64,000 bases of DNA from Amphiscolops sp. MND2022 (GCA_964187785.1 CAXLNC010000593.1:124001-188000); one strand, 5' to 3'. Counted from the stretch's first letter, positions 4,129-64,000 are shown. The notes: generated from the sequence alone by a model not told the origin. A program made the numbers and translations.

Positions 4129-4231
4129 ATAAAGAAAATAGAAATGGTGAAAACACTTTTGCAGACATTCTGGTAACGTTCTGTGGAATGGAATTGTTTT
4201 TCGTCTTTCAGTCCATCCCACCATCACTCTC

Positions 4232-6447
4232 ATGGCGACGTTATTCTTTTATTCTTTTTGACCGCTACCCTAGCTGCAAAAAACGTCAGGTTGAAGGTCT
4301 ACATTGACCCAAATCACCAGAGTAATGGCCTCAAAGCAACCCCTGATGCTGCATTCATTTGATCTTATTTCGAGTGTATACAAGTTCAAACATAACCCAT
4401 CTCAAAAAAGCATACAATTTTTCTCTCAGATTGGACACGGAAGTGTTTACACTGCAAGATAGGGACCGATTCATGTTGCTAGAAGAGAGAAACCACTTTA
4501 TTGGCAATCAATTTTATTTATTTGCTTAAAGTTTGCGCACGTATCGAGAAAAAACTTTGGGCACTACACTCTTTGTGTATGCCCCATCAAATCTGAAGCA
4601 GACTCAGATACTTTTTGTAACTCTAACGAGTGCGAATCATTGGATTTCGATTTCATGGACAAATCAGAGTCCACCTGTGCACAGACTGAAAGTCAACATT
4701 GCTCATCGAACCTACTCTTCTGTCAAGCATCATCTATCTGGAACTCTGGAGAAGATAGCCGCTCTTTCTGAACTAGTTTCTCAACAGAGCGATGATTCAA
4801 AAACTTTCATGGAGAATATGGACCCTGGCTCTAGATTTCTTCTCCAAATAGCGCCTTGTTTCATTGCCCTCCCAAAGTGTAAACAATTGGAAAACGAATT
4901 AGCTGAGTTTAAAAATATGTGCAAACAAGACTGTTTTGCTATTTTTGATGTTTGCAAGACTTGGTTGGAAGTTGCAGAGCGAAGGCAAGTTCATATATTC
5001 AAAGACTTTGTCAAAAATATGTATCAAGTTCTGGAAACCTTGAACTTGGGCAGAGAAATCAACAAATCGAAGTGTCAGTTTTACAATGATTCAGAATGCA
5101 TATCAATAAATGCTACAGTGCTGAAAAAGAAGCTCGACTAAAACAAAACCTCCCATTGCTACGACTCTGATTACAAGGGTACTTCTGACAGAGGCCAAAT
5201 ATCGAAATCTGTATCGGGAATGTCTTGTGTAAAGTGGGATCAATCGAGAAAGTATGACGATCTGCAGGGGTATTCACTCAATACAATAAAGTATGCCGAG
5301 CTTAATGGTTCGGAAAATTTCTGCATGAATCCAATCAATGTCACGACACAGTCAGTCGATCAATCAAAACATTGGTGTTTCGTTGATTATCAAGGAACAT
5401 GGGAACAATGCACCGTGCCTATGTGTCACAGTGCAAATCCCATAGTGTTTGCATGCATAGTAGTTGCCGCATCTATCCTTGCTGCTGTGGCCATGACATT
5501 TATCATGTTACTACTGAAATGTACGTTGTAATTAGAAACGTGATCCCGCAACAACAAGAGTACCTCTACAATCTCCCTCCCTTTTTCATTGAAGATGACA
5601 CTGGTCTGTGACACTTTGACCGAAATCAATAGAAAAAGCTCTCGCGAGTCGATGAGGGTGAATTTGGAGTTGTTTTTAAGGCTCTAATTAAGATGTCTAT
5701 GAATGACAATTTGATAGTTGCCGTGAAATCCTTACACGAAGTGCGGACAATACGGAGCAGGAACATTTCCGCAGTGAGGCCAAATTGTTGAACGAAATCG
5801 ACCATGAAAACATTATCAAGTTATACGGTGTCTGTTTCGAAGGAGAATCCATGTACATGATATTCGAATACATGCCAAATAGAGATCTCCACGATTTCCT
5901 CCGACAAAGAGCGCCCAATGACAGTGAGCTATCTCAGTTGTTATCCAAATCCATACAGGTAGCGAGGGGCTTGGCGTACCTGGCCGAAAAACGATACATA
6001 CATAGAGATACTGCCGCGCGAAACGTGCTCCTCCGAAGGAAGTGTGAGGACAACTTCTTGCCGCTAAACACTGAGATTTTGGCTTGTCTCGAAGTGTGCG
6101 TGTTGGAGACTATTACAGACTCAGAGGCAAGTCCATGCTACCAGTGAGATGGATTCCACCGGAAGCTATTACTTACATGACTTTTACAGCCGCCAGTGAC
6201 GTTTACTCTTTTGGAGCATTGTTATGGAAATTTTCTCTTTTCGCAACCGTATGAAAATGTTTCGAACGAAGACGTTGTAGATCACATTCTTCAACAGGAG
6301 CTCCTAAAAGAACCAATTGGATGTCCCAATGCTTTGTACGGCATCATGAAGCAATGTTGGAACTATCAACCAAAGCAGTGGGCCAGTGCCCATGCTCTAA
6401 TCGAACTGCTACAAGTGGGAAAGATTTGTAATTTCACGGTTCCTTAA
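4232..6447 (+). pseudogene. Intronless Ror/MuSK-family RTK pseudogene, copy 1 (signal peptide-Ig-Frizzled CRD-kringle-TM-tyrosine kinase)
   Basis: ATG at 4232 gives MATLFFLFFLTATLA. ORF fragments carry CRD cysteines (PCFIALPKC..MCKQDC..C), kringle (SGMSCVKW, NFCMNP, WCFV), a TM segment and kinase motifs (HRDTAARNVLL; DYYRLRGKSMLPVRW in another frame). There are many frameshifts and stops. Confidence 0.9.
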
Positions 6448-7029
6448 GCGACAAGAAACCCCTAATTTGCACAATTGGACAATTGGTATGTTAATGCAGA
6501 AGCAATCATTATACAGCAGCGGGTTTTTTTTGTTGAACACTTTACTTTTGTTTTGTTAGTATTTATGTTTTGGGGACTTGAACAACACGCATGAAGTCCT
6601 CAGGGAACAGTTCGAGAGAGACCGAATTACTTTAGCCTCTCTCTCTCTGATTTTTTTTCATATTTGCTTCCAGATATTTGACATTATTCAATCCACGTTT
6701 TCCGAACATTTTGCGGAAAAAAACTAGTCTTCGAGAAGTTCCGAGTTCATTTCGTGAATCTTTTCCAAATGAAATTAGTCTGAAGCAATTCCGATCTCAA
6801 TTCGTGGTTCTTTTTCCCAAAAAACAGTGTTCAAGACATTCCGAGTCCAATTTGTGTTTTTTTCCGAAAAAAAATAGTTCAAGGAGATTCCGAGTACAAT
6901 TCGTGGTTTATTTCCCAAAAAAGAGGTTTGAAGAAATTCCGAGTTCAATTCATGAATGTTTTGCTAAATAAACTTCGTTTGAAGGAAAATATTCAGCTTC
7001 GTTTTTTGGAACCATTTAAAAAACTCTTC

Positions 7030-7640
7030 CCTTATTTGATATAACTGTTGTTTCAAACGCGAAGTTCAGCCCCCTCCGGTGCTAAATTTGTCTTGCATTC
7101 AGTTTTGTCGTTTATTTTCGCCGTCCATACGTTCTTTTTTTGCGGTGTCGTTTCATACTCCTTCTCTTAGGTGTCCTAAGTTCCTTTTAGGCGTCCATAC
7201 TTCTTTCGGTGTCGTTTCACACTTCTTCTCTTAGGTGTCCCAGGTTCCTTTTAGGCGTCCATATTTTTTTGCGGTGTCGTTTCATACTTCTTCTCTTAGG
7301 TGTCCCAAGTTCCTTTTAGGCGTCCATACTTTTTTGCGGTGTCGTTTCATATTTCTTCTCTTAGGTGTCCCATGTTCCTTTTAGGCGTCCATACTTTTTT
7401 TCGGTGTCGTTTCACTCTTCTTCTCTTAAGTGTCCCATGTTTCTTTTAGGCGTCCATACTTTTTTGATGTCGTTCCACACGTATATTTTCCCATTAGGCG
7501 TCCCATGCAGTTTTAGGAGTCATTTTTGTCCCGTTTTTGACCTCGACTCCCCCCCATTCCCATAGCAGTCGTCTTCTTCTCCACAATGGTCTTCCTCTAG
7601 CGTCGTCCCCTTGACATTCTCGTCTCTTGACCTACACTTT
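7030..7640. repeat. ~65-69-bp minisatellite cassette (R66, subtype A) with conserved leader and C-rich tail
   Basis: Unit ttgcggtgtcgtttcatacttcttctcttaggtgtccc...ttaggcgtccata, ~6 copies, after the leader ttgtttcaaacgcgaagttcag(t)cccctccggtgcta. Confidence 0.92.
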
Positions 7641-7857
7641 TACAAGGTTTCAATTTTAGTATGCTTTACTATTTTACAATTGCTTTATTTTTTATTAGTA
7701 ATCAAAATTTTCATTCATTTTCAATCAGTTAGAATTCAATCAGTTGGTAATCGGATTTTTCAGAGTAGAGTTTTCGGTGAGACAAGGATAATACTCTGGA
7801 CTTTTGAAGAAAGGTAGAGTTTTGTCATTCGAAACAACGCTTAGTGTAAGCTAGACT

Positions 7858-8395
7858 ATTGGTTCTTTTTCAAACAAAACTGATTCAAGAAATTCTGAGA
7901 TCAATTGGTGGTTCTTTTCCAAATTAAACTGATTCAAGAAATTCCGAGATCAATTCGTGGTTCTTTTTCAAACGAAACTGATTCAAGAAATTCCGAAATC
8001 AATCCGTGGTTCTTTTTCAAACAAAATTGATTCAAGAAATTCCGAGATCATACCCTGGTTCTTTTCCAAACAAAACTGATTCAAGAGTTTTCGAGATCAA
8101 TTGGTGGTTCTTTTTAAAACAAAACTGATTCATGAAATTCCGAGATGAAATTGTGGTTCTTTTTCAAACAAAATTGATTCAAGAAAGTCCGGGATCAATC
8201 CGTGGTTCTTTTTCAAACAAAACTGATTCAAGAAACTCCGAGATCAATCAGTGGTTCTTTTTCAAACAAAACTGATTCAAGAAATTCCGAGATCAAATTG
8301 TGGTTTTTGTTTCAACTAAATTGATTCAGAAATTCCGAGATCGTTTCGTGGTTCTTTTTAAAACAGAACTGATTCAAGAGATTCCGAGTACAATT
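7858..8395. repeat. 49-bp minisatellite (R49)
   Basis: Unit caaacaaaactgattcaagaaattccgagatcaattcgtggttcttttt, ~11 copies. Confidence 0.93.
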
Positions 8396-9149
8396 CGTTG
8401 TTTATTTCCCAAAAAAACAAGTTTGAAGAAATTCCGAGTTTAATTCATGGTTATTTTGCCAAATAATTTTTGTTGGAAGGAAAACAATTAGATTCGTTTT
8501 TTTGGAGTCATTTAAAAATCTCTTCCCATATTTGATATAACTGTTGTTTCAAACGCGAAGTTCGGTCCCCTCCCGTGCTGATTTTGTTTAAATTCAGATC
8601 GGAGTAAAAAATGACTGACCTTCATTATTCCATTGCCAAGAAGAAGTTCTGAAAACAAATTATATATCTCCCTCGATTGATCATATATTTGAACTGCGAG
8701 TGGGGGAAAGGGGAGGGGTCGAAAAAAACTGGGGTGGGTTGGTAATTAACGGAAAAGATTCAAGAAAACTTTTTGAAAAATAGTATTTCTGAGGTACAAG
8801 TTGAGATAGAACTACAACTTGTTTGAAAAAATTAATTTCCAAGAACGAATTCTGAAAACGAGACAAAAACTCAATTTCTGCTGATGATTAACGGGTTGTG
8901 TGTGGAGGTTAAAAAAACCATCAGAACTACAGAACAGAATGTAGTCTCTCAATGTCTTCAAAGTAATTTTTTTCACTAACTCTTTAGAATTCTCGGTAAT
9001 TAACGGGTTTTTTCAACCCGTTTTCTGAGAGAAAACAACGAATCTTAACTTGGAAATTTAAGGAATGAAAAGAAACTTAAAAAAAGAAAGTAGGGAAGGA
9101 ATTTCCTTCATAAATTGAATGAAAACAAATCACTAATTAGTTAAAACAT

Positions 9150-9420
9150 TCAGTTCATATCCCAATTACTGTCAAAATTTTCAGAATCAAGCATCATTTG
9201 TGTCATGAGACTTGTCAATCATTCACCTCAGTTTGTTTGTTTAGTTCAGGCATCTACTTTTTAGTAGTGCCAAACTGTCTAAAAACTTGCGGTGAAAGTT
9301 TACTCAGTTACGCAACTGCAACATTCTGAGACTTTTCAGCCAATCAGAATCGATTAAAAGTTTGGACAAAAGCATCCGCCATCAAATTAGTTGTCATTCT
9401 GTACCGTTTAAAATCAACAC
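9150..9420 (+). promoter_or_regulatory. Conserved non-coding block with CCAAT box, possible promoter region of the AT-hook/ZnF gene
   Basis: The block containing ttttcagccaatcagaatcga..aaagtttggacaaaa recurs at ~28290-28530, ~34295-34540 and ~47625-47875, each time upstream of AT-hook-gene exons or an RTK copy. Function is inferred. Confidence 0.3.
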
Positions 9421-11426
9421 TCTCTGTCACTAGTAATCTCTCTCACTAGTAATCAACACTCTCTCAATTGTAATTCTATTAATTCTATTAATGAAGCTCC
9501 GTTCAAGAATCATTGAAAACAGTTAGTTGAATTTCAGCTGAAGTTTTTTAAAAAACTTTTAATGTTCTTATCAAAACAATCTGAGTTCGAAAGTGGAAAA
9601 AAACTGATTCATTGCTCTATCTAAATACCTTCAATTACATTTTGTAGGGATTACATACCAAAAAACATAAGAGCAAACAACATAAACAAGCGATCCCAAG
9701 AAATTTTATCTGTAATGCTCATACTTTTTTCAGTGATACTTTGAATTGTGAAAGCTTTTGAAAACTAAAACTTTCGGATAGTTTCTGTTAATCCCCTCCC
9801 AGTAAGCGAAATAAATTAATCCCCCCAGTATCAGCGATGAGATTCAAATGCAGTTAGAGTTATGAAAAAATATAGTAATATAGAGTAATAGAAACTGGGG
9901 GTCGGTGGGGGGATGTTGTTGCGTGTTAAATCCGTAGGGGGGGATTAAAGGAAAAGATCCAAACTTTCTCGTAAACATTTTTGTATTTTTGTTTTCTGAA
10001 ACTATTGTATTTTTAATATTGTTTGCTCTTATGTTATTTGAGAATTCACTTTTTGTAGGAATTTGAAATTCATTTTAAAGCATTCTGTTTACAATTTTAT
10101 TATCAACTACTCTTGGAAGTCACGGTGATTCTTTGCTAGCTGCTGAGCTAGTCACAGTATATTAGAGTATAACCCATCTCCTCCTGAGGCAATAAAAAAC
10201 TAGCCGAAACGTTTCATGTTGTCGGATTTTTTTCTCCAGATTATAATACTTGTAATTATATTCAATCCGAGCCCAAAAGCTCGAAATACTATTTTTACTT
10301 CAATCTGAGTTGAAAAAGACATTTGGAAAACGCAATGACATTTACGCATAGAAGAGGAAGGTTCAAGATCCAAAATTGACCGCCTGGAATTTTTATAACA
10401 CCATATAATGTAGATTTTCAGTTATTGAAACGTTCCTTTTTGCAGGATTTGTAATTGAAAACAGGAAAATCACTTCAAATTCCGAGATATAAATAGTCTC
10501 AGGTGGGGTTTTCAGTAGAAAGCGAATCCGTTCAAATTCCAAAATTTTCTTCCAGGATTTTGAACGTTACGAAAAAGGCTATGCAAAACCCCGAAAAGAG
10601 GCCAACGTAAAAGTGCCTACTCTGTCCAGTGGTGTTCGACCAAATTAAACCCCTGAAGAAGCATTTGCATAGCATTCACCACTGGGCTGTTTTGATCACG
10701 CATTCAGGCATTTCTTTTGCTTTCATATCCGAAAATTGAAAACTTTTTAGTCAAAATAGCTGAAAAAAAAAGAAAGTAACAAAAAAACTTTAATTGCGAC
10801 TTTTTCTCAAGTTTATCTTTGGGAAGTTTCAAACAACATCAGAAATTTCTGAAACAGTCTTGATTGTGAGTTTTGTGCTGGTCACAGGGCAAAGGATCCG
10901 AGAGAAACGGCAAGCAAGTCCGTTCAAACGACCCAACGACACGTGTCCTTCAACGACCACGTGAAGTGTGCCATTTTGATGTGAGCCACGATTAAGGCAG
11001 CTTCCCCAAAACCCGATCAAAAACTTTGATAATGTCGTGTCATCAGTTTCTCCAAATGTCTTCTTCGGAGTTTTTGTTTTTTTTTGCACACTCCGAATTG
11101 CAAAAAAAGATTTCGAAATTCAATCAAGAAATCGAAATATTTTTTTTTAATCACAAACAATCTAAAAGTCTCAAAGTCAAATCACGTGTTTTAAATAACG
11201 TCTTCATTAATGAAGTTAAATAATAAAATCTTTCGCACGTGCGTAGGTTGTATTTTTGAGGACATTCTGAGGCTGTCATGAATTCCTACAGTTTTAACAT
11301 TTTATGACATTCTGTAACATACAATAACTCAGTTTAAAAGCTTTTATGCTCGTGTTACTATCCAAAGTGTTTAATAAAATCACCCTAAAAGATTCGGAGT
11401 TGTTTTTACCTTGTTTCAATTTCTAG

Positions 11427-14400
11427 AAGACTCTGTTCCCGAGTCAGACTCGGCAAACCCCGCGGCTGTGACTCCTCCAGAGTCCCATACAGCCCCCCCC
11501 CCCTTCCCCAGCACCCAGGCAGACACCGACACCTCGCACTCCCCAAAGGCGTGCTGCCAAAAGGAAACGAGGTTCGTTTTTTTTTCGCTTCATATAATGC
11601 TTGAAACATTAATTTTGGAACACTTAAATGGAACCTAACTTTCCTTGTTCAAACATTTTCGAGACTAACACGTTCTATATTTTCTTCACAGCCATTTTGA
11701 TGAAAAGATGTAGTACGTCGTTTGTCTGAAATTGTTACGATTTTATTATGAAACAAGGTTTTATGATTCAACGTGTTTTTTTTGTTCGTACATAATTGTT
11801 TGACATGTCTGAGACCAGGACCCCGCTTTGGTTTCGTCATTTTTAAATCAATGAATAAACCAGATGGGTCCTAGTCACAAAGTGTTCCGATAACTTATTT
11901 GTTTTATATTTCATGTTTCGATGTTATCAACTTCTATTCACAACACAAATGTCCTCATTGAACATTTTCCAGACCAGGGTTCACTTTGTATTTTCATTAT
12001 AATTAAGATGAATATATATTGTGTCCCCTTAGTCTGAAGGTGTTACTATATTGTTTTACTTTTAGTTAAAATGTATTTTTTTGAACTTCGACGCTCTTTT
12101 TGCTGGGAGCAGTGCTGGAACTATATGAACACGCAATTATAGCACCAGTATTGATTGTCAGACTAAATGCGTCGTTTTTGGTAGATCACTTAGCCCTCCT
12201 GAAGGTGTTCGAATTATCAATTCAGTATTTTATTAATTTTTCAGTTTCCTCGGAGTGTGTTCTGCGGAGAGGCGGACTGCCCCGCGGTGTCGGTCACCAC
12301 GAAGATTAACATTAAGAAGGACGACAACATCCCCCACTAGAAGGCGCCGTGCCTTCTGCAAATGAAGTGGTTAATTCTACTTTCATACATTTTCCAAAAA
12401 ATGTTTGAATATATTCTGAGAATGGTTAATTTCGACTTTCATGTTTGATTTGCCTCCCTTTTCCTTCACAAAAATTTTAATTTGATTCTCATTTGCATTT
12501 CGTCGAGAAAACATGGGAATTCCTAAGGTCTCAAAAAGCTATTTAAAAACGTTCCGAGAACTTTGTTTAAAATTGTTTGTTTTTGTAAAAGAATTGCGGA
12601 TTCAGCCGAAAAAATTACTTTTAAAAGTGCATTTGCTAAGAATAATAATCAAAACGCGCCAAGGATAATCGAGCTGAGAGGAAAACTCATCAAAAAAAAT
12701 AGAAATGGCGAAAAACAGTGCGATGCAAAAAAAAAACGAAATAATCAGAAAAAGAAAAGAAAGACTTTATTTTGTTAAAGTCTCGAACAACAACGAAATG
12801 AAAAAGGCAGGACAAGAATTTCTATTTTTTGCAAACTTTCCTGATAAAATTCGATTTAGACTTCGATACTTGATGCAAAATTGGGCAAAGAAACGATTAT
12901 TTACCGTGCTTAGAAAACTTTCATTAGATAAAATTCGTTTTTAGTAACGGCGAGAAACAGGACGACACAAAAAAGCCTCCCAAGAAATAATAACAAAAGG
13001 GAAAGAAAGGCTTGCTTTTGAAAATGGTTAATTTTAATTTTAATCTTTGATTTGAAAAGTAACTTGAAGGTATTGCGAGGACGTTGGATTAAATTGTTGT
13101 TTTTTGTTCTAGAGATGCAACACACCACTTCAGCGGCGCCAGTTAAAACTACTGCTCAAATTGAAAGTTCGTCACTCGCTGTTCTAGAAGGTACTTCGCA
13201 AACTGAATGTCCTTCTTTGGCCGATCGAGATGTTACTCCGCAAAATGAAAGTTCTTCACTGGCCGACGGTTAATTCCAACTTTCATTTTCGATTTGAAAA
13301 GTAACTTGAAGGTATTCCGAGAACGTCGGATAAAATTGTTGTTTTTTTTCTAGAGATGCAACAAACCACTTCAGCAGCGCCCGTTAAAATTACTGCTCAA
13401 ATTGAAAGTTCTTCACTCGCTATTCAAGAAGTTACTCCGCAAACTGAATGTCCTTCACTGGCCGATCGAGATGTTACTCCGCAAAACGAAAGTTCTTCAC
13501 TGGCCGACGGTTAATTCCAACTTTCATATTCGATTTGAAAAGTAACTTGAAGGTATTCCGAGAACGTTGGATAAAAGAACGTTTTTTTTCTAGAGATGCA
13601 AGTATGGGCACCTGAGGAGATGACCCCTGGCTCTAGTTCTACACCTCGTCGTCTGCCTTCAATTGGAGGTATACTTCAAAGAAGTATATTTTAAAACAAA
13701 TCCCCCCACCACTGAAAAATCAAACAAACAATGAAAAGGACCCTATAAGGTGTCATAATTGATTCTCATCATCGAGAAAAAACACAAGTTTGTTTCAGTA
13801 ATAATAGCTCTTAATAAGTGCTGTTAATAGAAATGATATTAAAATAAACTTGGTTAATAACGGTTTGAAATGTACTGTGTTTTTTCCAACGTTTAGAGAA
13901 CATCGAAATGTGTCTCGAAGACTAGACAAGACATGAAAACGGTGAGCAACAAATGGTCAATGGTAAAGTAAAACTTACTTTTAAAAGTTCATTGTTTGCG
14001 TTTTTGTTCCAAATTCTCAGAATTATCCAAGTGTTTTTGAAAAAAAGATCCAGGAAACAACTATTTCATTCATTGAGATATAATTTCGAAGTTTCTTACA
14101 CGTTTTGTATCATATTCTGTAAAACAGTTATCTCAGTTGCAATCTTCTGAAAAAACACTTTTACACATCTTGATAACATTCCGTTGAATGAAACTACTTT
14201 TTCTTTTTCTTGTTTCAGTCCATCCCACCGTCATAATAGACAATAGATGCAATACCGAAGAAGAAACAGAAGAAGCGACAACAAAACTAAGAAAACGAGG
14301 GCACCACCGCAAGGGCGAAGTGGTGGTAAAAGCTCTAAGACTGCGACGAAGAGGGCCTCAAAAAGAGGAAGAACAGTACAAGATTTCGTCGGAGTACCAA

Positions 14401-14805
14401 AATCGGCCGAGAAAGACAACGATTGAGAGACCGAGACAAAGAAGAGCCTCTAGACTCCACTACATACTCTGCGGGGAGGAGGTGGTGACCTCAAACATTG
14501 TGAGGCACTTCTCCTTGAAGCATTGCTACCCGCTAAAATTGCGGAATTACATCTTAAATAAAACCCGAATCCGCCACCAGCAACAGGGCAAGCACCTCAT
14601 TTTTAATGATTGCACTACTTGACTTCGGCGCTTTGTTGTAACTCGATCTCACACACACCATTTTGATTATTGTCATTTATTTGAAGTGCCTGATTTCATG
14701 AGCCTTGATGGTCTTTGTCGCAAGGCAAAGGCCATCATGGCTGTGTGCGATGGGGACTCGAACAACGCGTTTGACCTCCTGAAGGAAGAGTTGGGGAGAG
14801 ACTAA
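11427..14805 (+). pseudogene. Multi-exon AT-hook/tandem zinc-finger gene (AHZ), copy A, disrupted
   Basis: Phase-1 exons at 11427-11571, ~12245-12370, ~13115-13268, ~13353-13509, ~13594-13668, ~13897-13961 and 14219-14805. The last exon has CILC..RHFSLKH but an in-frame TGA at 14620-14622 replacing a Cys, and a degenerate AT-hook (RGHHRK). Confidence 0.8.
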
Positions 14806-15249
14806 CTTACCATAGCCTCTCCTTCTGATTTTTTCAGATTTTCTTCCAGATCATCGATTACATTCATTCCACGTTTTTCAGAACAATTTGCTGAAAAAAA
14901 TTCTTCAAGAAATTCAGAGTTCAATTCGTGGTTCTCGTTTGATAATTTCATTTTGTGTTTTTTTCCAATGAAAATTAGTTTGAGGAAATTCCAAGTCCAA
15001 TTTGTGGTTCAATCCCAACAAACAGTCTTCAAGTAATTCCGAGTTCAATTTGTGTTTTTTTTCCAAAGAAAATTAGTTCAAAGGAATTCCTAGTTCAATT
15101 GGTGGTTCACTTTTATATAATATAAGTTTCAGTAATTCACTCCATGATGTTTTTCGTTTTTAAGACATTAAAACAATTTTTGAGTGCATTTGCTATCACG
15201 ACTTCAAAATAAATAGATTCGTCTTTTTGGAACCATATAAAAAACTCTT

Positions 15250-15730
15250 CCCATATTTGATCTAACCGTTGTTTCAAACGCGAAGTTCAGTCCCCTCCGG
15301 TGCTAATTGTGACTTGCATTCAGTTCATTTTGTTTATTTTTGTCATCCATACGTTCTTTTTTTGCTGTTTTGCTGTGTCGTTACATACTTTCTTCGGTTG
15401 TCCCATTTTACTTTTAGGCTTCCATACCTTCGTTTTTGCGGTGTCGTTACATACTTTCTTCGTTTGTCCCATTTTACTTTTAGGCTTCCATGCGTTCTGG
15501 TTTGCGGTGTCGTTACATACTTTCTTCGGTTGTCCCGTTTTTTTGTCTTTCGGTTGTCCATATGTCTTTTTTGCGGTGTCATGCCATACATACATTACCG
15601 TTTTTGACTTACCCCCGACTATGCCCCCATCCCCACAGCATTCTTCTTCCTCTTCACCCCCCTACCCACTGACTTCTTTCCCATTTGACTATCCCCAACC
15701 CAACAGCACCCGTCCTCTCCTTCCCTTGAC
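15250..15730. repeat. R66 cassette, subtype B
   Basis: Same leader as at ~7050; the units carry ttcttcggttgtccc instead of ttctcttaggtgtccc. Confidence 0.9.
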
Positions 15731-15964
15731 TTTTGCCCAACCTTTACTTTGCATTACTTTGATCAAAGTTTAGCAAATGTAGAAAATCAACATTTGTTTG
15801 CAATTTGCCATGTATACTGGCAATTAGTTAGAATCAAAATAGTTAGTCATCACAGTTTTCAAATAGTGTTTTAATGAGACAGGGATAATACTCTAGACAT
15901 TGGCAAAAAAAGTTCAAGTTTACCCATTCGAAACAACTCTTAAATGACTGGCCCAACTTAATTT

Positions 15965-52319: not shown

Positions 52320-52630
52320 TTGGTTCTTTTTCAAACAAAACTGATTCAAGAAATTCCGAGATCAATTCGTGGTTGTTTTTCAAACAAAACTGATTCAAGA
52401 AATTCCGAGATCAATCCGTGGTTCTTTTTTCAAACAAAACTGATTCAAGAAATTCCGAGATCAATCCGTGCTTCTTTTTTTCAAACAAAACTGATTCAGG
52501 AAATTCCGAGATCAATCCGTGGTTCTTTCTCAAACAAAACTGATTCAAGAAATTCCGAGATCAATTCGTGGTTCTTTTTCAAACAAAACTGATTAAAGAA
52601 AATCCGAGATCAATTCGTGGTTCTTTTTCA
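52320..52630. repeat. R49 minisatellite
   Basis: ~6 copies. Confidence 0.92.
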
Positions 52631-54917
52631 TTCGTGCCAAGTTGAATGTTTTCAAATATCACGGCCAAGTTAATCAATCTATCCAGCAATTTCTACCAAA
52701 TTGCTTAGAAACTGGTGACTTTTCTCAATTAGGACATTCCTGTAACTATCTCATTCAAGAAAGAAGATCACATGATTGCAAGATTTGAATTTCCAATTAT
52801 TATTTTCTTGTCTTTCTGCCTTTTTGCACAGAAAAGACTGTTTCATGATTGTTTTCTGCTTTTTAACTAGTTTCTTGTTTCTTTGTTTTTTTTTGTTTTA
52901 ATAAACCAGGAGATTCTGGTTTTACAATGTATATGTAAATGCATGTATATTATATAATGTACAAAGAATTAGAACCATGAAATTCCGAGACATAATTTTA
53001 ATGTACAAGTATTTCAAATGTACAATAAATTACAAATAGGAAAGTATGAGACATAATTTAGCACACCAATGTATGGTTGTTTTAATAAACCAGGAGATTC
53101 TGGTTTTACAATGTATATGTGAATGCATGTATCTTATATGTACAAAGAATTAAAACCATGAAAATCCGAGACATAATTTAGGTGTACAAGTATTTCAAAT
53201 GTACAATAAATTACAAATAGGAAAGTATGAGACATAATTCTAGCACACCAATGTATTGCATGGAAAATAAGAAATAATTTTAGTATAAATGCATTACATG
53301 TGTTTTACAATTATGAAGTACAAAAGTATTACGAAGACATGTATTATAAATTTAAATGGTTGATGAAAGTTCTGGTAAAAGATTACAATGTAGAATTTCC
53401 GAAAAATAATTAAGTTGTACAGGTAGTTCAAATGCACAATAAATTACTAATAGGAAATTCTAATGTATTATAAGGTCACAACAATGTATTATATGTATTA
53501 TAAATGCGAATTGTGGTACAATTGCTTTAAATTTGGTATAAAATAAGGTACATGTATGTAAGTGCTAATTCATAAAACGATCCAACAAACATTTTGACAA
53601 AACTTCTGAATTGGTTTCATGATTTTAAAATGAATATGTTTTTTATGCCTAAGTTGAATTGTAAATAAGTAAGAATTAAACCCCTTTCCAAACGTACAAA
53701 ATGCAAATTTGAAGAAATTTACATTATTAGTAAAATTTGGCGAAATACTTAAAAATTGACCGCAATGCCCAAAAGTTTCTCCTAAAAGCTCTACTTTTGT
53801 CACTCGAAAGTTAAAGCAATTGCGGATACAAATTTATTCAGCCACGTCGACACAAAACAACACGAGGCAAAGCCCACGAACTATTGTCTTGAGTACTGTA
53901 GTTTCACTTGAGGCAACTCTCTCTGAATTTTTTTGTTTTTCGGCATTTTGTTTGTTTGAAAGGGAAGAAATAACACAAAACAGCTAGTATTTAAAAATAC
54001 TGGGTGAGAAAAAGAACTGAAATTGTACAATGAACTGGTTATTAGCACCAGTACCAGGAAGTTGCTTTTCGCACAAGGCTATGTTCAGTACTGAAATGGT
54101 ACTGTAGTGGAAATTCTTCGTCTGCCAGTCTTGTGGTCACGTCTTTACAACTGAATGTCGCCTCCGTCGACTGGTCCGGATTTGACGTTGTATTGAATCG
54201 GTCATTTTAGGCGGAATGAGACTCAAACTTGATTTTAAAAATTGTGGAACACTCGGTTTTGATTGAAAAAAGTTGAAAAAAATATGAAATTCGGAGACAC
54301 CCACTTTTGATAGGCTTAGAAGAAACGTGCATATGATTTGAAAAATAACTTGATGAAATTCGGAGACACTCACTTTCGATTGGCTTAGAAGAAACGTGCA
54401 TATGATTTGAAAAAAAAATGATGAATTTCGGAGACACTTACTTTTGATTGGCTTAGAAGAAACGTGCATATATTTTTGAAAAAAAAATGATGAAATTCGG
54501 AGACACTCACTTTTGATTGGCTTAGAAGAAACGTGCATATGATTTGAAAAAAAAACAATTTGATGAAATTCGGAGACACTCGATTTTGATTGGCTTAGAA
54601 GAAACATGCATATGATTTGAAAAAAAATAATAATTTGATGAAATTCGGGGACACTGAGTTTTGATTGGCTCAGATGAAACGTGCATTCAATTCAAAAAAA
54701 AATACTTTGATTAAGTTCGGAGACACTGATTGGTTAAGGTGCAGAAAATTCTGCATTAAAACGTGCAGAAAATTCGAAAAAAAATCTAAAGAAACTCTGA
54801 GATACTCAAATGGAAATGGTTGAAAAGCAGCGTGCGAAAAAATCAGAATTTTCGAGAGCCTAGAAAAAACTTGGACCCAAAGTTCATTCCGCCATGGAAC
54901 AGTCTCGACTGTTCAAA

Positions 54918-57900
54918 TCATTTCAGATGATTGTTGAACGACGATTTGACTTTGTTGTATATGGTGGTGACGTCGTTTGCCTCTAAAAAGTGACCGGCGT
55001 CACGCAACATACGCTCAACTTGTTTCCTTGAAACGTTCGTCGTTATGTCGTAGAAAACAGGCAGCGCATCTGCCCATAGTGGCCTTGTTTCTACGCCTTT
55101 GAACATCAGCAAACTCTGAATGTATCTTTCTCGTTTGGGGCAACGCGGTGGGGGCGGTTCTTCTGGCCGAACGTCACTGACTCGTTGACCGTCACTGAAA
55201 ACTACACCCCCTGCCATTGGTCGTTTCCGTTTCCCAGATGGCTGTGACCCTTTGTCCTCAATTTCATCATCTCTTGTGGTGGACTCCATGATGTTGCTTG
55301 TCATCATCAGACTGTCGTCTCGCAACCACGGAGTTTCCTCTGCCACTTGACCCTGTCCTACCTGTGGAACACCCCCCGACCCTGACTGGAAACTCTGTGA
55401 TGCGCCCTGCCCTGTACTCCTAACGTCTTGCCCTCTCCTTTCCCGACCCGGTTCCTCTTCAGTTGTTGGTTGTAGAGCCAGCTGCCGCCTCGTCTTCCCT
55501 TTTAAAACATGAAAGGTGACTCAAAACGCTAGAGAAAATTATGAAAAATAATTTAAAGAAAATCGGAGACTCTCGATTGTAATTGGCGGACACAAAACGC
55601 TAGAGAAAATTATGAAAAAATATTTTAAAGAAGTTCGGAGACTCTCGATTGTAATTGGCGGACACAAAACGCTAGAGAAAATTGTGAAAAATATTTTAAA
55701 GAAATTCGGAGACTCTCGATTGTAATTGGCGGACACAAAACGCTTGAGAAAATTATGAAAAATATTTTAAAGAAGTTCGGAGACTCTCGATTGTAATTGG
55801 CTGACATAAAACACTAGAGATAAATAAAAAAGACATGAAGGCATTCTTAGACACTGTTCTACTAACCCCGTTCCGCGCGCTCAATTTCTTTCTGCCTCGC
55901 TTCTCTCACCGCTAATGGAGTCGCATCCCCGATTGTTGAGGCAGTTGAATCAACCGGGACAGTTACATTTACTGGTTCTGGCACCTCGTCTTCTTCGGGG
56001 ACTGCGCGAAGATCGTTGACGAGGTGATCCAGCAATCGATGTCTGTTGGCAATATTGGCTGACATGTAATATTTCTCAGCTGTTTGCTGTGTATGCCCAG
56101 TCTGGTGCAGATGCTCGGTCATGACATCAGCAGCGATTTCCTCATTCTGCCTCAGCTGCTGCATTCTCCCCTCCCTGTACTTCCTCATTGAGTTGGAGTT
56201 GAAGCGGATGTCAGTGGCTCTATCGCCGAACTTCGCTGCGAAGACTTCGGAGATCTCGCGAGCCATACTTCTATCCGCTGTACCCTTCTGAGTAGAAAAG
56301 ATCAGTACCGGAACTGCCTGGAACTCTCGTCGGTACGTCTCTTTCAAGTGGTACAGGAGGGGGATCTGGTCAGGCTCCACACGGAGGGCGACGTCGTAAT
56401 ATTGGCCGGTTTTGTGTCTGCTCGTCAAAACCGACCCGCTTCGTTGGATTTCCTCGAGCATTTGCCAAGTCAAGTTCATAATTGGCTGATTTCTTGGCTG
56501 GTAGGAAGTAGTTGAGGGCTTTCTCCTCCTTCAAAGAAAGACTCTCTTCCTCAACGTTTTCCTGCAACAGCTTCAGAACTTGCTCGTGGCGTGTTACCAC
56601 GATGTTGTGGCTGGACACCAGCTTGAAGCGTTCGTCAGCCTTCCTCCGGCTATCGCAAGCAGCGCTGGTTGTGTAAATCGATTTCACTTCGTTCATGGCA
56701 GCGTGGATCCGGGCAGCGTCGATGTTGTCGCGGATCACAAGATAGTCCACGAATTTCTTCAGGCATGCCAAATACGTCAAGATCGTTTGAAGGGCCAGTC
56801 GCTGACGTTTCTGGATCATCATCGTCACCTGGAGTAATCTGTGGGTTTCCTGGAAGTGGTTTGTTTCCCCGTAGAACGTCGCGAGCGTGTTTTTTAGCCA
56901 AGGCCGGCTGCGGTCCTTTCCAGAATCTCCGGTGCATGCTTCCAGCGCTTGCCTCTGGTGCTGAATGTATTCTTCAACACGCTCGACGTCCGTTCTACGG
57001 GCCACGCGGCTCTCTTTCATCTTATTTCTAAGCGACTGTGGCAGAGACCTGGAAAAAATTAGAAGTTTAAAAATTCTGATAACACAGTATGAAAAATACT
57101 TCGGAGCTAGAAAAAGGTTAAGGAAATTCTGATAACGTAGTATGAAAAATATTTTTGATCATGAAAAATTCAAGGAAATTCTAATAACGCAGTATGAAAA
57201 AGATTTTCGAGTTAGAAAAATATTAAAGAAATTCTGATAACGCAGAATGAAAAAAAAATTTCGAGCTAGAAAATAGATAAGGAAATTCTGATAACGCAGT
57301 ATGAAAAATATTTTCGAGCTAGAAAAATATTAAGGAAATTCTGATAACGCAGAATGAAAAAAAAATTCGAGCAAGAAAAAAAATAAGGAAATTCTGATAA
57401 CGCAGTATGGAAAAGATTTTCGAGTTAGAAAAAGATTAAGGAAATTCTGATAACGCAGAATGAAACAAAATTTTCGAGCTAGAAAAAAATTAAGGAAATT
57501 CTGATAACGCAGTATGAAAAATATTTTCGAGCTAGAAAGAGTTAATCCGATGACTACTCACTTCACAATTCGAAACTCCGGTAGCTTCTCCAGGTGACCA
57601 GGACATCTCGATTTGTGAGTTGGTACCGAAGCAACACGGCGCATACACGTCGAGCAGAACCTGACTACTGTCTTCGAATCGCGGAAGCGGTAGTAGTCTT
57701 TAATCAGAGTCTGTTCGGTTTCGGTGAGGAGATCGCCGTGCACGTGCTTCAAGTGCCGATCAATTCGCACAACAGACACATGGCAAATGATGCACTCGTT
57801 CTCCTGTGAGTATTTGGCTCGCTTCTCTTTCGCAACTGCGGCATCAACAGGAGCATTTTGAGGCACATCAGATGTTCCTGGTTGTTCATCCTTTGCATTG

Positions 57901-59335
57901 TGTGGAAAAACTGCCGGCATTTCCATCAACCGCTGCACTGACATTTCTTGCGGCACTGACATTACTTCTTCCGGCACTGCTGATTCCAATGAGTCTGTGT
58001 CCGCATCGGAGAGAACAGGCGCACTCATAAGCTCGCAGAAGACTGGTTGTTGATTCATCAGCTGCTCTTCCGGCATTGAACTCAATGCATCCACTTCCTC
58101 TTCTTGGAAAGCAGGATTTGAAGCAGCAGCTAACTCTTCGACCAAGTCAGCTGTCATCTCGTAACCCAATGATTCTGGGTCTTCAGCTTGGGGGAGTTGC
58201 GCCATCATCCTCGTCCAGTTGCATTTCTGACACAAACAGTCGACATTGCCCTCGCCGAAGTAATCATCAGAGTACTTGACGAGCAATTGCGCACCGGGCA
58301 AAATGTTTTCAAGAGCTTTCACCTTGACGATGGTCCTCGCCTTGGTACCCGAACAGACAAACTCCACGTTCGGCTCGCACGAGTGGTTGATGAAACTCGC
58401 GGGCCCGAGCATGATTCGGTCTCCGCTTTTTCCGCCGAATACTGAGAAACACTGCTCAGGGCTGAGCTCACCTTCCACTTTCTCAAGGAATCCAACCAAT
58501 CCTAAACGAGATGAGGTTTACAAATTTGAAAATACATCAATGAATTTCAATAGGAATATTCCGGGAACAAATAGTTTCTAGTTTACGACTTATTGTTTTC
58601 TATTGAAGTCTGTAGAAAATCAGAAAAAAACAGCCTAAAAAATTTTGAGACACTCGAATAAAATTTTGTTGTAACTTTATTCGAAATTCAGAAAATAATT
58701 TGATAATTTTCTGAGAGACTCGTTTGTAATTGGTTGAAAAGAAGCCTGTAAAGAATTCAAAAAATTACCTAAAGAAATTTTGAGACACTCGAATATAATT
58801 GGTTTACACATGTTCCATTTATTTTGTTAGAAATAAATTCGAAATTCAAAAAATACTTTGATGAAATTTTGAGAGACTCATTTGTAATTGGTTAAAAAGA
58901 AGCTTGTAAAATTCAAAAAAATACCTAAAGAAATTTCAAGACACTCGAATATAATTGGTTCAAACAAGTTTTATCTATTTTGTAATAAATTTAACTTTGT
59001 TATAATTCAAAAAAACTCTGATATTAACCATCAATGATGAAGCCTTTAGGCAGCGGTCCCACTGCTTCATTGGGCACGTAAACAGCGAAGCTGTCCGAAA
59101 GATCGGACGGGTAGTTTACGTATTCCGCCCGGATATCAACTTTTTGCATACTCAGCAAGTAGCTCTGAAAGAGATCATTGTACAGCTTCAGAGCACCCTT
59201 CTGCCTAATCGCTTCTTTGAAATCGCTGGCGATATAGAATTTGTGTGACGTTTTGTCATTGTCGATTAGTTGCTTTGTAACTTCAGCGTCCATTGCTCCT
59301 AACAAGTTGCATTTTGACAAGTTTGTAGAGGCCAT
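54918..59335 (-). CDS. Four-exon Suv4-20-like SET - zinc-finger pair - tyrosine recombinase fusion gene (~1000 aa if one frameshift at ~56480-56510 is repaired)
   Basis: Exons 59335-59029, 58501-57562, 57048-55867 and 55498-54918, all GT-AG, with split codons G|GA, AA|G and G|GG in frame. SET: LGPASFINHSCEPN..VKAL..LLVKY..DYFGE..CLCQKC. YR: RNQPIMNLTW, HKTG, NSMRK, TGHTQQTAEKYY. Confidence 0.88.
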
Positions 59336-59394
59336 TTTTTAAATTGAAATAGAAAGTAGGTTGCTGGATCGAAATTTAAATTGAATTGAATCGA

Positions 59395-59620
59395 CATTGA
59401 AATTGAAGAGGTAGGGTTGAATGAACGTTGCGGTTTCGAAATCGATGGAGAAGTTTGAAAAGTAGTTGTGTTAAGCACACTATCTTGGAGATCGCAAAAA
59501 GTTTTAAATTGAAATTGAAGAAGTAGGAATGAATGAAGGTTGCTGTTTTAAAGTAGATCGAAAAGTTTGAAAAGTCATTGAGCTGAACGTACTAGCTTGG
59601 AGATCGCAAAAAGTTTTAAT
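59395..59620. promoter_or_regulatory. ~112-bp tandem dimer immediately upstream of the SET-YR start codon
   Basis: attgaaattgaag at 59396 and 59508, each unit ending ttggagatcgcaaaaagtttta. A regulatory role is inferred from position only. Confidence 0.35.
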
Positions 59621-60629
59621 GATTTTGCTATTGAAAGACCAGAGCTTGAGGAAGCCACTAATTAACACTTAACCTACAACACCATCATCATTTCCACTCA
59701 ATCGCATTCAATTACCTCATATTTCATTAACTTGAGTCAATTTTAATTCGAAATGCGGTTAGATATAATTATTTTCCAATTAGCAATAGGTGTAGAAGCT
59801 GCATGATTAAGAGTAAAATAGTGATGAAATTACCTTCTGTCGAATAATTAAATGAAACGATATGATATTTTGATTAATGTAAGCAATTAAAATTCAATTA
59901 CCTCAAATTTCAGCAACTTGAGTTAATTTTAATTCGAAATGCGTTTGGATATAATTACTTTCCAATTAGCAATAGGTGTAGACGTTGCATGAACAAGAGT
60001 AAAATAGTGATGAAATTACCTTCTGTCGAATGAATAAAGGAAACGATTTGATATTTTGATTAATGTAAGCAATACGTTAAAATCGTGGTATTCCAAACAT
60101 GCTTGGTGGGGGAAGGATAACAAAAGACGAGCTTTCAAAAATTTTCACTGAAGAAATTCGGAATAAAAAATGACTAAGACCTCATGAATCAAACTACAAT
60201 TCAGAGCAAACAGCTAGTCAGTTGATATTCGATTAAAAAATTTACTTGCTAGTATTCCGAGAACGTTTGATAAAATTGTACTTTTTCCAGAAATGCATCC
60301 TGTCGGAAATGCAGACAAAGTGGCAGAACAGAAACAAACTACAATTCAGTGCAAACAGCTAGTCAGCAAGTGTCCGACGCCAGCAAGTCCAATTTGTGCT
60401 TCATTCGCAAAAAAACATTCTTCAGTTCCGAGTTCAAAAAAAACATCCGAGTTCAATTTGTGTTTTTTTTTCATATAAAATTAATTCAAAGAAATTCCTA
60501 GTTCAATTTGTCTTTTTTCCCAAAAAAGTTTGAGAAATTCCGAGTTCAATTCATGGTTTTTTTTCCAAAAAAAATTCATTTGAAGGATAATAATTAGATT
60601 CGTCTTCTTGGAACCATTTAAAAAACTCT

Positions 60630-61190
60630 TCCCATATTTGATGTAACCGTTGTTTCAAACGTGAAGCGCAGTTCCCTCCGGTGCTAATTTTGTCTTGCAT
60701 TCAGTTCTTGTCGTATGTTTTCGTCGTTCATACGTTCTTTTTTGCGGTGTCGTTTCATACTTCTTCTCTTAGGTGTCCCATTTTGTATTTAGGCGTTCAT
60801 ACCTTTTTTGCGGTGTCGTTTCATCCTTCTTCTCTTAGGTGTCTGATTTTGTATTTAGGCGTCCATACGTTCTTTTTTGCGGTGTCGTTTCATACTTCTT
60901 CTCTTAGGTGTCCCATTTTGTATTTAGGCGTCCATACTTTTTTTGCGGTGTCGTTTCATACTTCTTCTCTTAGGTGTCCCATTTTGTATTTAGGCGTCCA
61001 TACTTTTTTGGTGTCGTTTCATACGTATATTTTCCCTTTAGGCGTCCCATTTAGTTTTAGGAGTCATTTTTGTCGCGTTTTCGTTTTAACCCCGACTACT
61101 CCTCCCCCCCCCATTCCCACAGCAGTCGTCTTCTTCCCCACAATGGTCTTCCTCTAGCGTCCTCCCCTTGACTTTCCCGTCTCTTGACCT
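60630..61190. repeat. R66 cassette, subtype A
   Basis: Leader, ~5 units and tail. Confidence 0.92.
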
Positions 61191-61394
61191 ACAATTTTAC
61201 AAGGTTTCAATTTTAGTATGCTTTACTATTTTACAATTGCTTTTTTTATTAGCAATCAAAATGTACATTTTCAATCAGTTAGAATTCAATCAGTTGGTAA
61301 TCGGATTTTTCAGAGTAGAGTTTTCAGTGAGACAAGGATAATACTCTGGACTTTTGAAGAAAGTTGGAATTTTGCCATTCGAAACAACGCTTAG

Positions 61395-62335
61395 TGTAAG
61401 CTGGATTATTTGTTCTTTTTCAAACAAAACTGATTCAAGAAATTCCGAGATCAATTCGTGGTTGTTTTTCAAACGAAACTGATTCAAGAAATTCCGAGAT
61501 CAATCCGTGGTTCTTTTTTTCAAACAAAACTGATTCAAGAATTTCCGAGATCATTCCGTGGTTCTTTTTTTTTCAAACAAAACTGATTCAAAAAATTCCG
61601 AGATCAATCCGTGGTTCTTTCTCAAACAAAACTGATTCGAGAAATTCCGAGATCAATTTGTGGTTCTTTCTCATACAAAATTGATTCAAGAAATTCCGAG
61701 ATCAATTCGTGGTTCTTTTTCAAACAAAACTGATTCAAGAAATTCCGAGATCAATTCGTGGTTCTTTTTCAAACAAAACTGATTCAAGAAATTCCTAGAT
61801 CAATTCGTGGTTCTTTTTCAAACAAAACGGATTCAAGAAATTCCGAGAACAATTCGTGGTTCTTTTTCAAACAAAACTGATTCAAGAAATTCCGAGATCA
61901 ATTCGTGGTTCTTTTTCAAACAAAACTGATTCAAGAAATTCCGAGATCAATTCGTGGTTCTTTTTCAAACAAAACGGATTCAAGAAATTCCGAGATCAAT
62001 TCGTGGTTCTTTTTCAAACAAAACTGATTCAAGAAATTCCGAGATCAATTCGTGGTTCTTTTTCAAACAAAACTGATTCAAGAAATTCCGAGATCACTTT
62101 GTGGTTTTTTTTTCAAACAAAACTGATTCAAGAAAGTCCGAGAACAACTAGTGGTTCTTTTTCAAACAAAACTGATTCAAGAAATTCCGAGATCAATTCG
62201 TGGTTCTTTTTCAAACAAACCTGATTAAAGAAATTCAGAGATCAATTCGTGGTTCTTTTTCTAACAAAACTGATTAAAGAAATTCCGAGATCAATTCTGG
62301 TTCTTTTTCAAACAAAACTGATTCAAGAAATTCCA
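61395..62335. repeat. R49 minisatellite, longest array (~19 copies)
   Basis: 49-bp period (e.g. 61868, 61917). Confidence 0.95.
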
Positions 62336-62819
62336 CGCTCTGTTTCAGACTCAGACCAACAGAAATAACTACTGTAGACTCAGAATCTCTTCAAATTACT
62401 GACCAACCAAAAACGTCATTCCGTTGTACACTCCGAATATTTTCTAGATATTTTTTACGGACCAATTAGAAACCTCACTTGGCCAAAGACTTGGAATATG
62501 TTTAAAGTAATTTTGTTCACTGACAAATCAGAAACCTCACTCGATTGTAGTCTCAGAATACCTTCAAAACATAATTTTCAACTGAATAATCAGAAACCTC
62601 ACTCGATTGTAGACTCAGAATATCTCCAAATGTATTTTTTCGAAAATCAATGACACTACATGGGGGTACAATAAAAAATATTATATGCAAACAACAAATT
62701 ATAACGACACTACATGGGGGTACATTCAAAAATAATACGTCAATATCAAGGTATGCAATATTGAAAAAAAACCAAATTACTTCATGTGATTATTATATGC
62801 AGATTTTACCTGTTATAAA

Positions 62820-63776
62820 TTAGATTAACATGTTTTTTTCTAGTTTATACCCGGCGTCTTTGAGCTGTTTCGCTACATATTTGGGGGAAACGTTTTTCTC
62901 GATATCTTGGAATATTCTCATTGCATCCTGGACATGCTTGGGGGGCTGTGGTTTCCTGAAAGTGAGTAAACTTTTTTTGAAAGATTTGTTTGTGTGGCCC
63001 TTTTTTTGTGACACGTCGAATGTTTCGTTTACTGCTTTTGTAAAGACTTCGTCTCGTTGTCCAGTCCAGACTAGACGCAACCTCGAACCGTCTTCTTTCA
63101 ATTTATAAAAGTTGCGCAGAAGTTTGCTTTCTTTTGCACTGAGTCCTTTGTGTCTTTTGACGTGGTCGTACATGTGACCGTGACACACCATATCACTGCA
63201 AACGATGCACTGTTCGAGATCTGTCTCGGAACCTGTTGAAAAAAAAACTTTTTATACAAAACAAGTTCTAGTTTGAATGAATATATTCTAATAATTTAGA
63301 TTCTGATAATCTCTAATTTGATTGACAATGAATAAAAAACTTACTACCGCTCACGGAAGGATCGACCAGTGTTGATGATAGGGCCAGTATTGAAGGAGAT
63401 TCATTGGGACCATCAATCATGGGGTGGTTGCCCGCACTAGTGGTGGCTTGGTTCTCATCTTCTGTTGGGTAATGTGGTGAAAGTTCATCACCACTCTTGG
63501 AACCTGCTGAATATAATTATATATTTTGATCAAGTATCTAAAAAGGAAATGATCGCTTCTGAGTTTGGTTCTAGTCCTTCTAGTATATAGACTGAATTCT
63601 ATAAACATGTCACGGAATTCCTAAGCGAAATTGTTGATAAAAATTAGGATACTAATTTCAAAACTAACCATCACTCATGGCTTGGTTGCTTTCATGAGTT
63701 GGTTGCACACTGATGGTGGTTCCCGTCTCAGCCTCTGTGGCATAATGATGTGAAAAGTCATCGGCAGTCTCGGAAC
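62820..63776 (-). CDS. ZnF-Myb gene copy B, three intact phase-1 exons (5' end not identified)
   Basis: Exons 63776-63669 (108 nt), 63503-63345 (159 nt) and 63232-62820 (413 nt) splice in frame. CIVC-x12-HVKRH, then RLVWTGQRDEVFTKAV..PPKHVQDAM..VAKQLK. Confidence 0.82.
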
Positions 63777-64000
63777 CTGTTGAACATAATACTATATTTT
63801 GATCAAGTATTTAAACGAGTATGATTGGTTCTGAACGTAAGTTTTAGTCCGGCCCCAGACCGAACTTTTGAGTTTTACTGTAGATTATACAGATAGAATT
63901 CAATTTGAATTTCATTGAGACTTTTAAATTTAGTTTTGTTTAGAATCTGATAATTTTTGAAAAGCACTTGATAAATAAACTGAAGATTTTTTTTCGGTTA

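Follow-up and report, generated by a model that had tools for sequence, protein, structure and literature searches.

The 64,000-nucleotide stretch of Amphiscolops sp. MND2022 DNA analysed here (GCA_964187785.1, CAXLNC010000593.1:124001-188000; hereafter the window) is probably a mosaic of same-direction segmental duplications beside a satellite, holding decayed copies of a Crypton-like tyrosine recombinase (YR) gene, YR-less derivatives of that gene and pseudogenes of a receptor tyrosine kinase (RTK). The putative derivatives are an AT-hook/zinc-finger cassette (AHZ) and a short gene, X, which an earlier reading of the window made from the sequence alone (the sequence-only reading) had called 'ZnF-Myb'. 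In a self-comparison of the window, all 1978 internal matches of at least 100 bp were direct and 0 were inverted. Downstream of the satellite, 51,967 of 59,872 bases (87% of 4129-64000) are repeated within the window; about half of these reused bases stem from one tandem duplication, and older partial copies with 75-96% identity make up the rest. The sequence-only reading had described a mosaic of reused modules, and its tally stands: we likewise count four AHZ, three RTK, two YR and two X copies, the R66 core at nine sites and five R49 arrays. Its suggestion of repeated duplication and rearrangement beside the satellite is also borne out.

The tandem duplication consists of two adjacent copies in direct orientation:

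31216-44553, plus strand: tandem duplication, copy 1 (13.3 kb)
44556-57956, plus strand: tandem duplication, copy 2, ~98.8% identical to copy 1

This 13.4-kb unit is the sole large repeated unit in the window. At the junction, 44553/44556, a point inside the SET-zinc finger (ZnF) reading frame is joined bluntly, with 2 filler bases, to a point upstream of AHZ, and neither terminal repeats nor a target duplication were found there. With unrelated points joined in this way, and no element termini at the join, the largest unit is a tandem segmental duplication and not a transposition unit. The junction also truncates the first copy of the YR gene, whose SET part is missing as a result. One would not expect a recombinase to sever the gene that encodes it when it mobilizes its own element.

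The same modules recur in different orders, with 85-97% identity, on further contigs from an independent assembly, one of which, L003, shares the surroundings of the second YR copy:

41512-44553, minus strand: YR gene copy 1, ZnF - YR - C-terminal domain; SET lost at the junction, frameshift as in copy 2
54918-59338, minus strand: YR gene copy 2, SET - double ZnF - core-binding and catalytic YR - C-terminal helical domain
52636-60591, minus strand: block around YR copy 2, common to contig L003 at 91-96% identity

The SET domain of copy 2 is in two pieces (in minus-strand order). Judged against the continuous open reading frame (ORF) of L003 and all relatives, this copy has one frameshift in its YR part, and three more interruptions are occupied by spacers or tandem arrays. 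Because arrays occupy equivalent places in contigs L003, L004 and L009, these three interruptions may be introns. Copy 1 has the same lesions as copy 2 plus the loss of SET; those of the L003 copy are particular to it, an in-frame deletion and a frame change. In the two independent copies of the YR block (window and L003), homology ends sharply at 52636, next to an R49 array, while the other side stays collinear into further modules. At this sharp end (52636 in the window, 14598 in L003), the block opens with a ~45-bp stretch holding GGCCAAGTT twice; in L003, an additional diverged copy of this stretch lies just beyond the block boundary.

The SET-ZnF-YR family is apparently undescribed, to judge from protein searches. 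With the catalytic piece as query, 1.84 billion representative proteins yielded 68 matches, none of them named. A profile search of a 5.8-billion set returned 35 matches, again none named, all from ENA except one from Logan, with no NCBI or UniRef source. Two full-length relatives, P0049 (895 aa) and P0024 (1065 aa), have the same architecture in a single intronless ORF. SET stands directly upstream of ZnF-YR in five lineages (window, L004, L007, L009 and L010) and also upstream of YR in P0049; in the window, Pfam places it at 57561-58499 on the minus strand with 34.5 bits against a cut-off of 22.4.

Conserved residues and a predicted fold both point to the window YR being a genuine member of a tyrosine recombinase family. 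Of 40 aligned rows, 35 keep the first catalytic R, 34 the K, 33 the second R, 34 the H and 32 the Y; the first catalytic His is N in 22/40 rows and H in 8/40. The catalytic piece in the window has R, K, N, R, H and Y within one frame. The AlphaFold prediction for P0049, which has high confidence at residues 300-740 and 817-895, shows a two-domain fold (core-binding and catalytic) of the Cre/Xer type, and its confident PDB matches are all YRs (XerA, Cre, Tn1549 Int, XerH, TelA and lambda Int), with a probability of ~1 and a TMt of ~0.5. No member exceeded the gathering score for Pfam Phage_integrase (best 23.8 bits versus 27.1, 4e-5), and sub-threshold matches occur in two relatives and in none of the window pieces. 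The YR pieces and the C-terminal domain had no Pfam match, and PDB sequence searches with the window YR piece and with the family profile matched no recombinase. Neither DUF3504 nor GCR1_C matched the window pieces (E <= 10) or the 40 family members (E <= 0.1), and the Starship Captain domain DUF3435 had no match in the YR family.

We scanned the non-redundant part of the window and obtained 120 stop-free ORFs of at least 75 aa, in which Pfam recognized kinase, Kringle, weak Fz and SET domains only. No reverse transcriptase (RT), RNase H, integrase core, capsid, ATPase, polymerase, helicase or DDE transposase was found among these ORFs by Pfam. The sequence-only reading had listed RT/RNase H, capsid, packaging ATPase, pPolB and RepHel as absent, arguing against DIRS, Polinton and Helitron autonomy; its list holds for this ORF set, and the YR gene stands without genes of retro-elements, Polintons or Helitrons close by. 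The YR family is multi-copy, its lineages have long been under purifying selection relative to one another, and its young copies decay neutrally; in this it would behave as expected for the gene of a mobile element of Crypton-like type (YR-only, RT-less). What the data demonstrate are the duplications with their orientation and junction, the domain architecture, the homologies and the decay; present or past mobility of the family and heterochromatin in the region are what we infer. Elsewhere the family forms clusters of up to 71 near-identical sequences. On L009 (ERZ25071359), two ORFs with a YR catalytic domain stand in tandem (10001-11593 and 11745-12803) after one SET ORF, the first of them belonging to the 71-member cluster. 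L010 carries a third YR lineage of its assembly, between Ty3/gypsy-like and BEL/Pao-like long terminal repeat (LTR) retrotransposon genes (2737-3261, 17086-20688 and 23080-23198).

Two further modules resemble parts of the YR gene but have no YR part:

13538-15956, plus strand: AHZ cassette 1, with upstream region, AT-hook and double-ZnF ORF (14188-14622), R48, R66 (15367-15541) and tail
20935-23507, plus strand: AHZ cassette 2, with ORF 21602-22234 (210 aa, the longest; RGRP AT-hook), R48 and R66 (22761-23077)
31160-33956, plus strand: AHZ cassette 3, with ORF 32070-32450 and R65 array 33082-33529
44556-47296, plus strand: AHZ cassette 4, duplicate of cassette 3, with ORF 45368-45787
15968-17138, minus strand: module X copy 1, a ZnF remnant and the C-terminal domain of the YR protein
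62822-64000, minus strand: module X copy 2, with ORF 62820-63191, extending past the right edge of the window

In the AHZ protein, a double zinc finger comes after an AT-hook (RGRP); this finger matches the zinc finger of the YR family in pairwise BLASTP (8e-4) and in hhalign (probability 95.7%, E 1e-8, 88 columns). The successful hhalign comparison used only YR-family members that bear the zinc finger; against the whole-family profile, in which the zinc-finger columns are mostly gaps, AHZ had no match. The C-terminal half of X is 47% identical to the C-terminal domain of the YR protein (BLASTP 1e-18). Pfam matched neither AHZ nor X, and the 'Myb' part of the earlier label was not borne out: the C-terminal-domain ORF has no Pfam match at E <= 10 (no Myb_DNA-binding). 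From these similarities, AHZ and X appear to be YR-less offshoots of the YR gene. The dN/dS of AHZ is 0.12-0.35 between lineages and about 1-2 among young copies. A 241-bp tandem repeat (13026-13601) precedes cassette 1 and a 177-bp tandem repeat (20551-20998) precedes cassette 2. In cassette 3, the AHZ coding region contains an (AAG)n microsatellite in its 5' part (31854-31923), where the open frame is shorter than that of the duplicate (45368-45787). On L002 (6160-10664), three AHZ copies follow one another with a ~1.75-kb period and no R48/R66 tails; their dN/dS exceeds 1, with very few substitutions behind the figure.

The RTK modules have the domain order of a ROR-like receptor:

4129-6570, plus strand: RTK cassette copy 1, a ROR-like pseudogene abutting the satellite
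35415-37837, plus strand: RTK cassette copy 2, Fz (weak), Kringle, transmembrane segment (TM) and tyrosine kinase; broken relative to P0096
48748-51179, plus strand: RTK cassette copy 3, duplicate of copy 2
35375-35414, plus strand: 40-bp piece of satellite monomer at the left end of the RTK cassette, repeated at 48708-48747 and at L005 9943-9982

The kinase (164 bits) and Kringle (46.8 bits) score above their cut-offs, whereas Fz reaches 20.1 bits against a cut-off of 32.1; an Ig domain was not detected in the RTK. The best named relative is 29% identical, and close relatives are confined to one ENA assembly. There, P0096 on L005 is an intact, intronless 791-aa RTK ORF at 96% identity, in a cluster of 12 sequences, and P0097 on L006 is an 894-aa paralogue at 67%. 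Measured against P0096, copy 1 is the most decayed, with at least two frame changes and ~9 stops, and the two young copies each have one to two frame changes plus stops. The dN/dS is 0.245 for P0096 versus P0097 and ~0.73 for the window copies versus P0096. By these comparisons, the three window copies appear to be pseudogenes of the intact 791-aa gene on the other contig. Downstream, copy 2 is followed by R48, R67 (38228-38594) and R49 (38980-39291), and copy 3 by R67 (51567-51935) and R49 (52321-52630).

RTK and AHZ cassettes have just two parts in common, a ~73-bp head, which resembles an intron end plus first codons, and a tail made up of R48, R66 and ~400 further bases. The cassette frame is thus the same and the coding sequence within it is exchanged, much as the sequence-only reading had it when it described RTK-filled AHZ cassettes. 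The 40-bp satellite piece occurs in three contexts: beside the satellite, inside the 13.4-kb unit and on L005, where an R66 array lies upstream. It joins the RTK cassette by the same junction as at 4128/4129, and upstream of the L005 cassette no satellite match longer than these 40 bp was found. If a master next to the satellite had been copied at the DNA level, such a trace would be expected in its copies.

We propose that segmental duplication of DNA, mostly in tandem, would have copied a few cassettes repeatedly in place and always with one orientation, and that deletion and decay would have followed. Two broken SET-ZnF-YR genes would have been among the copied material. AHZ would combine an AT-hook with the zinc finger of the family, and X a zinc-finger remnant with its C-terminal domain. 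The RTK cassette would be a lineage-specific, intronless ROR-like coding sequence in an AHZ-type frame, copied together with 40 bp of satellite.

Several observations weigh against this reading. The order AHZ(+) ... X(-) ... YR(-) recurs on L004, where the YR protein is 59% identical, and this hints at a larger linked unit. The other contigs could either be dispersed loci or parts of one large region. Just one end of the YR block is delimited, which leaves the family only putatively mobile. Modelled alone, the 222-aa catalytic piece of the window gave Foldseek matches to YRs with a TMq of 0.41-0.44 that were not significant. Finally, co-oriented R66/R49 arrays flank each cassette as well as the YR block; they have a 12-nt core in common, GAAATTCSGAGA, and in principle a site-specific recombinase could use such arrays. 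This core is found in arrays with periods of 49, 62, 69, 71 and 185, with 46 matches versus 0.02 expected, 44 of them on the plus strand (for example at 7938, 39640, 40954, 42296, 54286 and 61439).

The segmental mechanism would also suit a cluster of host genes, in which a domesticated recombinase-derived family and a kinase family were tandemly amplified and no mobile element took part. Purifying selection between lineages for AHZ, RTK and YR and the intact 791-aa RTK on L005 fit this explanation, and the duplication mechanism is clearly segmental. We nevertheless regard it as unlikely. There are many decayed copies on many contigs, the clusters of near-identical sequences are large, and the setting is rich in satellite and transposable elements. 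Catalytic residues are kept across the family, unlike in typical domesticated DUF3504 genes (PMC3212892), and motif arrays bracket the YR gene of L007 (see below).

The sequence-only reading itself had proposed a giant YR element that mobilizes cargo. In this explanation, an element of 13-15 kb or larger moves AHZ, RTK and other genes, and the window holds its rearranged copies. The YR is real and without RT, and this part of the proposal stands. AHZ and YR are convergent in the window unit and also on L004, where the YR is diverged, and an RTK coding sequence sits in an AHZ-type cassette. A single mobile unit is where the proposal fails, and we consider it quite unlikely. The only large unit is the tandem duplication whose junction truncates the YR gene, all repeats are direct, and the YR genes are broken. 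Neither termini in common nor target-site duplications were found. The arrangement of modules on other contigs also argues against it:

L001: AHZ, arrays and X
L002: three tandem AHZ copies
L003: YR block
L004: diverged YR with X and AHZ
L005 and L011: RTK cassettes

Cassettes and YR occur independently, with RTK or AHZ lacking a YR within +/-10 kb on L001, L002, L005 and L011, and YR lacking AHZ, X or RTK nearby on L007, L009 and L010. Even the recurrent order on L004 is composite. Its AHZ and X have 86-88% DNA identity to those of the window, whereas the YR genes are too diverged for a DNA-level match, and the parts therefore have discordant histories. The locus gives no animal counterpart of Starships.

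The arrays allow a different role for the recombinase. The SET-ZnF-YR protein, or an intact relative elsewhere, would recognize R49/R66-type arrays and, in the manner of an integron, move array-bounded cassettes (AHZ, RTK, X and its own gene) between arrays. Such a system would account for modules in shuffled order but with strict polarity and for the exchange of one coding sequence for another within one cassette frame, and it would constitute a cassette system in an animal genome. Every cassette terminates in co-oriented R48-R66(-R49) arrays, the core described above is far in excess of expectation and almost confined to one strand, and co-orientation of the repeats is strict. A distant, intronless SET-ZnF-YR gene on L007, a 6.3-kb contig from a JGI metagenome, is bracketed by its own 16-nt motif, with 10 copies upstream (803-2179), 10 inverted copies downstream (5075-5571) and 3 beyond (5911-6151). 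These motif arrays look like element ends; scans of JGI metagenomes for further copies of the L007 type found 0 by protein and 0 by motif. The arrays of the window, too, may be protein-binding or recombination sites. As an explanation of the mosaic, however, we hold integron-like movement to be very improbable. The junction of the youngest event (44553/44556) is blunt and lies outside the arrays, and the YR genes here are broken. Of 69 rearrangement breakpoints, 24 fall in tandem arrays versus 19 expected (p = 0.12); as this enrichment is not significant, we dropped array-mediated exchange as a demonstrated mechanism. Arrays with a common core can also be related by descent, and homologous unequal exchange accounts equally well for the co-orientation.

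It is extremely improbable that the duplication and mosaic are assembly artefacts, namely false haplotype duplications or collapsed repeats: the region does contain two assembly gaps, and the 1.2% divergence of the large copies is within the heterozygosity range of some animals, but the duplication junction is continuous sequence without N, the same modules occur in other orders on at least six contigs of an independent assembly, and older copies differ by 10-25%.

19235-20082, no strand: two assembly gaps, 19235-19382 and 19883-20082, around a 500-bp island, 19383-19882

The gaps fall in a part of the window that has no second copy in it (18715-20082), and they are spanned by no module. On the left, the flank runs collinear with L001 and L004 until its last base, 19233; the right flank, from 20083 on, matches modules other than those of the left flank; the island had no match in the window or the compared contigs. 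Since the flanks match different modules and the island matches nothing, continuity and frame across the gaps cannot be established. ORFs crossing them are only runs of X (placeholder residues), and no conclusion on the mosaic rests on their content.

The satellite and the remaining features that make up the window are as follows:

1-4128, no strand: 180-bp satellite, 23 copies by Tandem Repeats Finder (TRF), continuing past the left edge of the window
6571-8597, plus strand: cassette tail with an R48-like array, R66 array (7136-7466) and R49 array (7860-8457)
8598-12632, plus strand: module W, non-coding by Pfam
24908-25267, plus strand: R49 array (TRF)
25592-27735, plus strand: copy of the block upstream of the YR gene, next an R48 stretch with one R66 unit, then a Cys-rich ORF region
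60737-62334, plus strand: R66 array (60737-61024), then the longest R49 array (61412-62334, 18.7 units)

The 23 satellite units are 94% identical (TRF). Minus-strand ORFs of up to 385 aa run through the satellite at 664-1821, 2135-2980 and 2977-3519; they are probably meaningless, because the 180-bp unit is a multiple of three and stop-free in that frame. Module W has a second, shortened copy at 27736-30205 and terminates in a small repeat, M (11796-12174), which recurs at 23539-23864, 29939-30205 and 34830-35217. Within 25592-27735, positions 25643-26410 match 59706-60483 at 94%. The Cys-rich ORF region further on (27174-27419) had been labelled RING in the sequence-only reading, and the label was not confirmed: the ORF has no Pfam match at E <= 1 (no zf-RING-type). 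Rfam and tRNA scans of the window gave no match.

Eukaryotic YR elements are few to our knowledge, comprising DIRS/Ngaro, Crypton and Starship elements. A further YR family would widen this picture, particularly one with a SET domain of the histone-methyltransferase type, its own zinc finger and a C-terminal domain. We set the window family apart from CryptonA/F, DIRS and Starship elements because the sequence criteria for these groups fail and the ends are undefined. It would also give a concrete case of stand-alone DNA-binding genes, AHZ and X, budding from a recombinase gene.

Cryptons are YR-only DNA transposons (Goodwin et al. 2003; Kojima & Jurka 2011, PMC3212892). Like them, the window has a YR gene without RT or another transposition enzyme, its YR has an additional domain of DNA-binding type on the C-terminal side (compare GCR1_C in CryptonF), no terminal inverted repeats or LTRs were seen, and copies are mostly decayed. 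Unlike them, the family has no Pfam similarity to DUF3504 (CryptonA/I) or GCR1_C (CryptonF), and it has an N-terminal SET, a double zinc finger and tandem arrays inside and around the gene; its termini and short (4-6 bp) terminal direct repeats are undefined from the two copies compared. With DIRS, Ngaro and VIPER elements, the family shares the nearest Pfam model for its recombinase, Phage_integrase (the weak match above), and bracketing by repeats, but the window lacks RT, RNase H and methyltransferase. Starships are fungal elements with a Captain YR containing DUF3435 (PMC10104507). The likeness is the idea of a YR that moves neighbouring cargo genes; the differences are the lack of DUF3435 similarity, of defined ends and of target duplications in the window, the animal-type host genome, and a large unit that is a tandem duplication with its junction inside the YR gene. 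Polinton/Maverick and Helitron elements differ in that no pPolB, rve integrase, capsid, packaging ATPase or Rep/helicase is present in the window.

Two parts of the window recall host proteins. SETMAR, a domesticated single-copy gene of primates, combines a SET domain with a mariner transposase of the DDE type. The window family similarly joins SET to the DNA-recombination enzyme of a putative mobile element, but the enzyme is a YR, the family is multi-copy, and the architecture is common to five diverged lineages. The RTK has the order Fz-like, Kringle, TM and tyrosine kinase of ROR-family receptors; it differs from them in its low identity to named proteins, its intronless and multi-copy state, the lack of a detected Ig domain and an Fz match below cut-off.

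As a locus, the window resembles pericentromeric mosaics of segmental duplications. It is adjacent to a satellite, reuses modules in varied orders, contains a young tandem duplication with a non-homologous junction and holds pseudogenes of a functional gene elsewhere. It differs from such mosaics in that its copies are all co-oriented and that much of the material comes from one recombinase gene family. The locus would be a satellite-flanking region built by same-direction duplication, which carried along pseudogenes of a lineage-specific receptor kinase.

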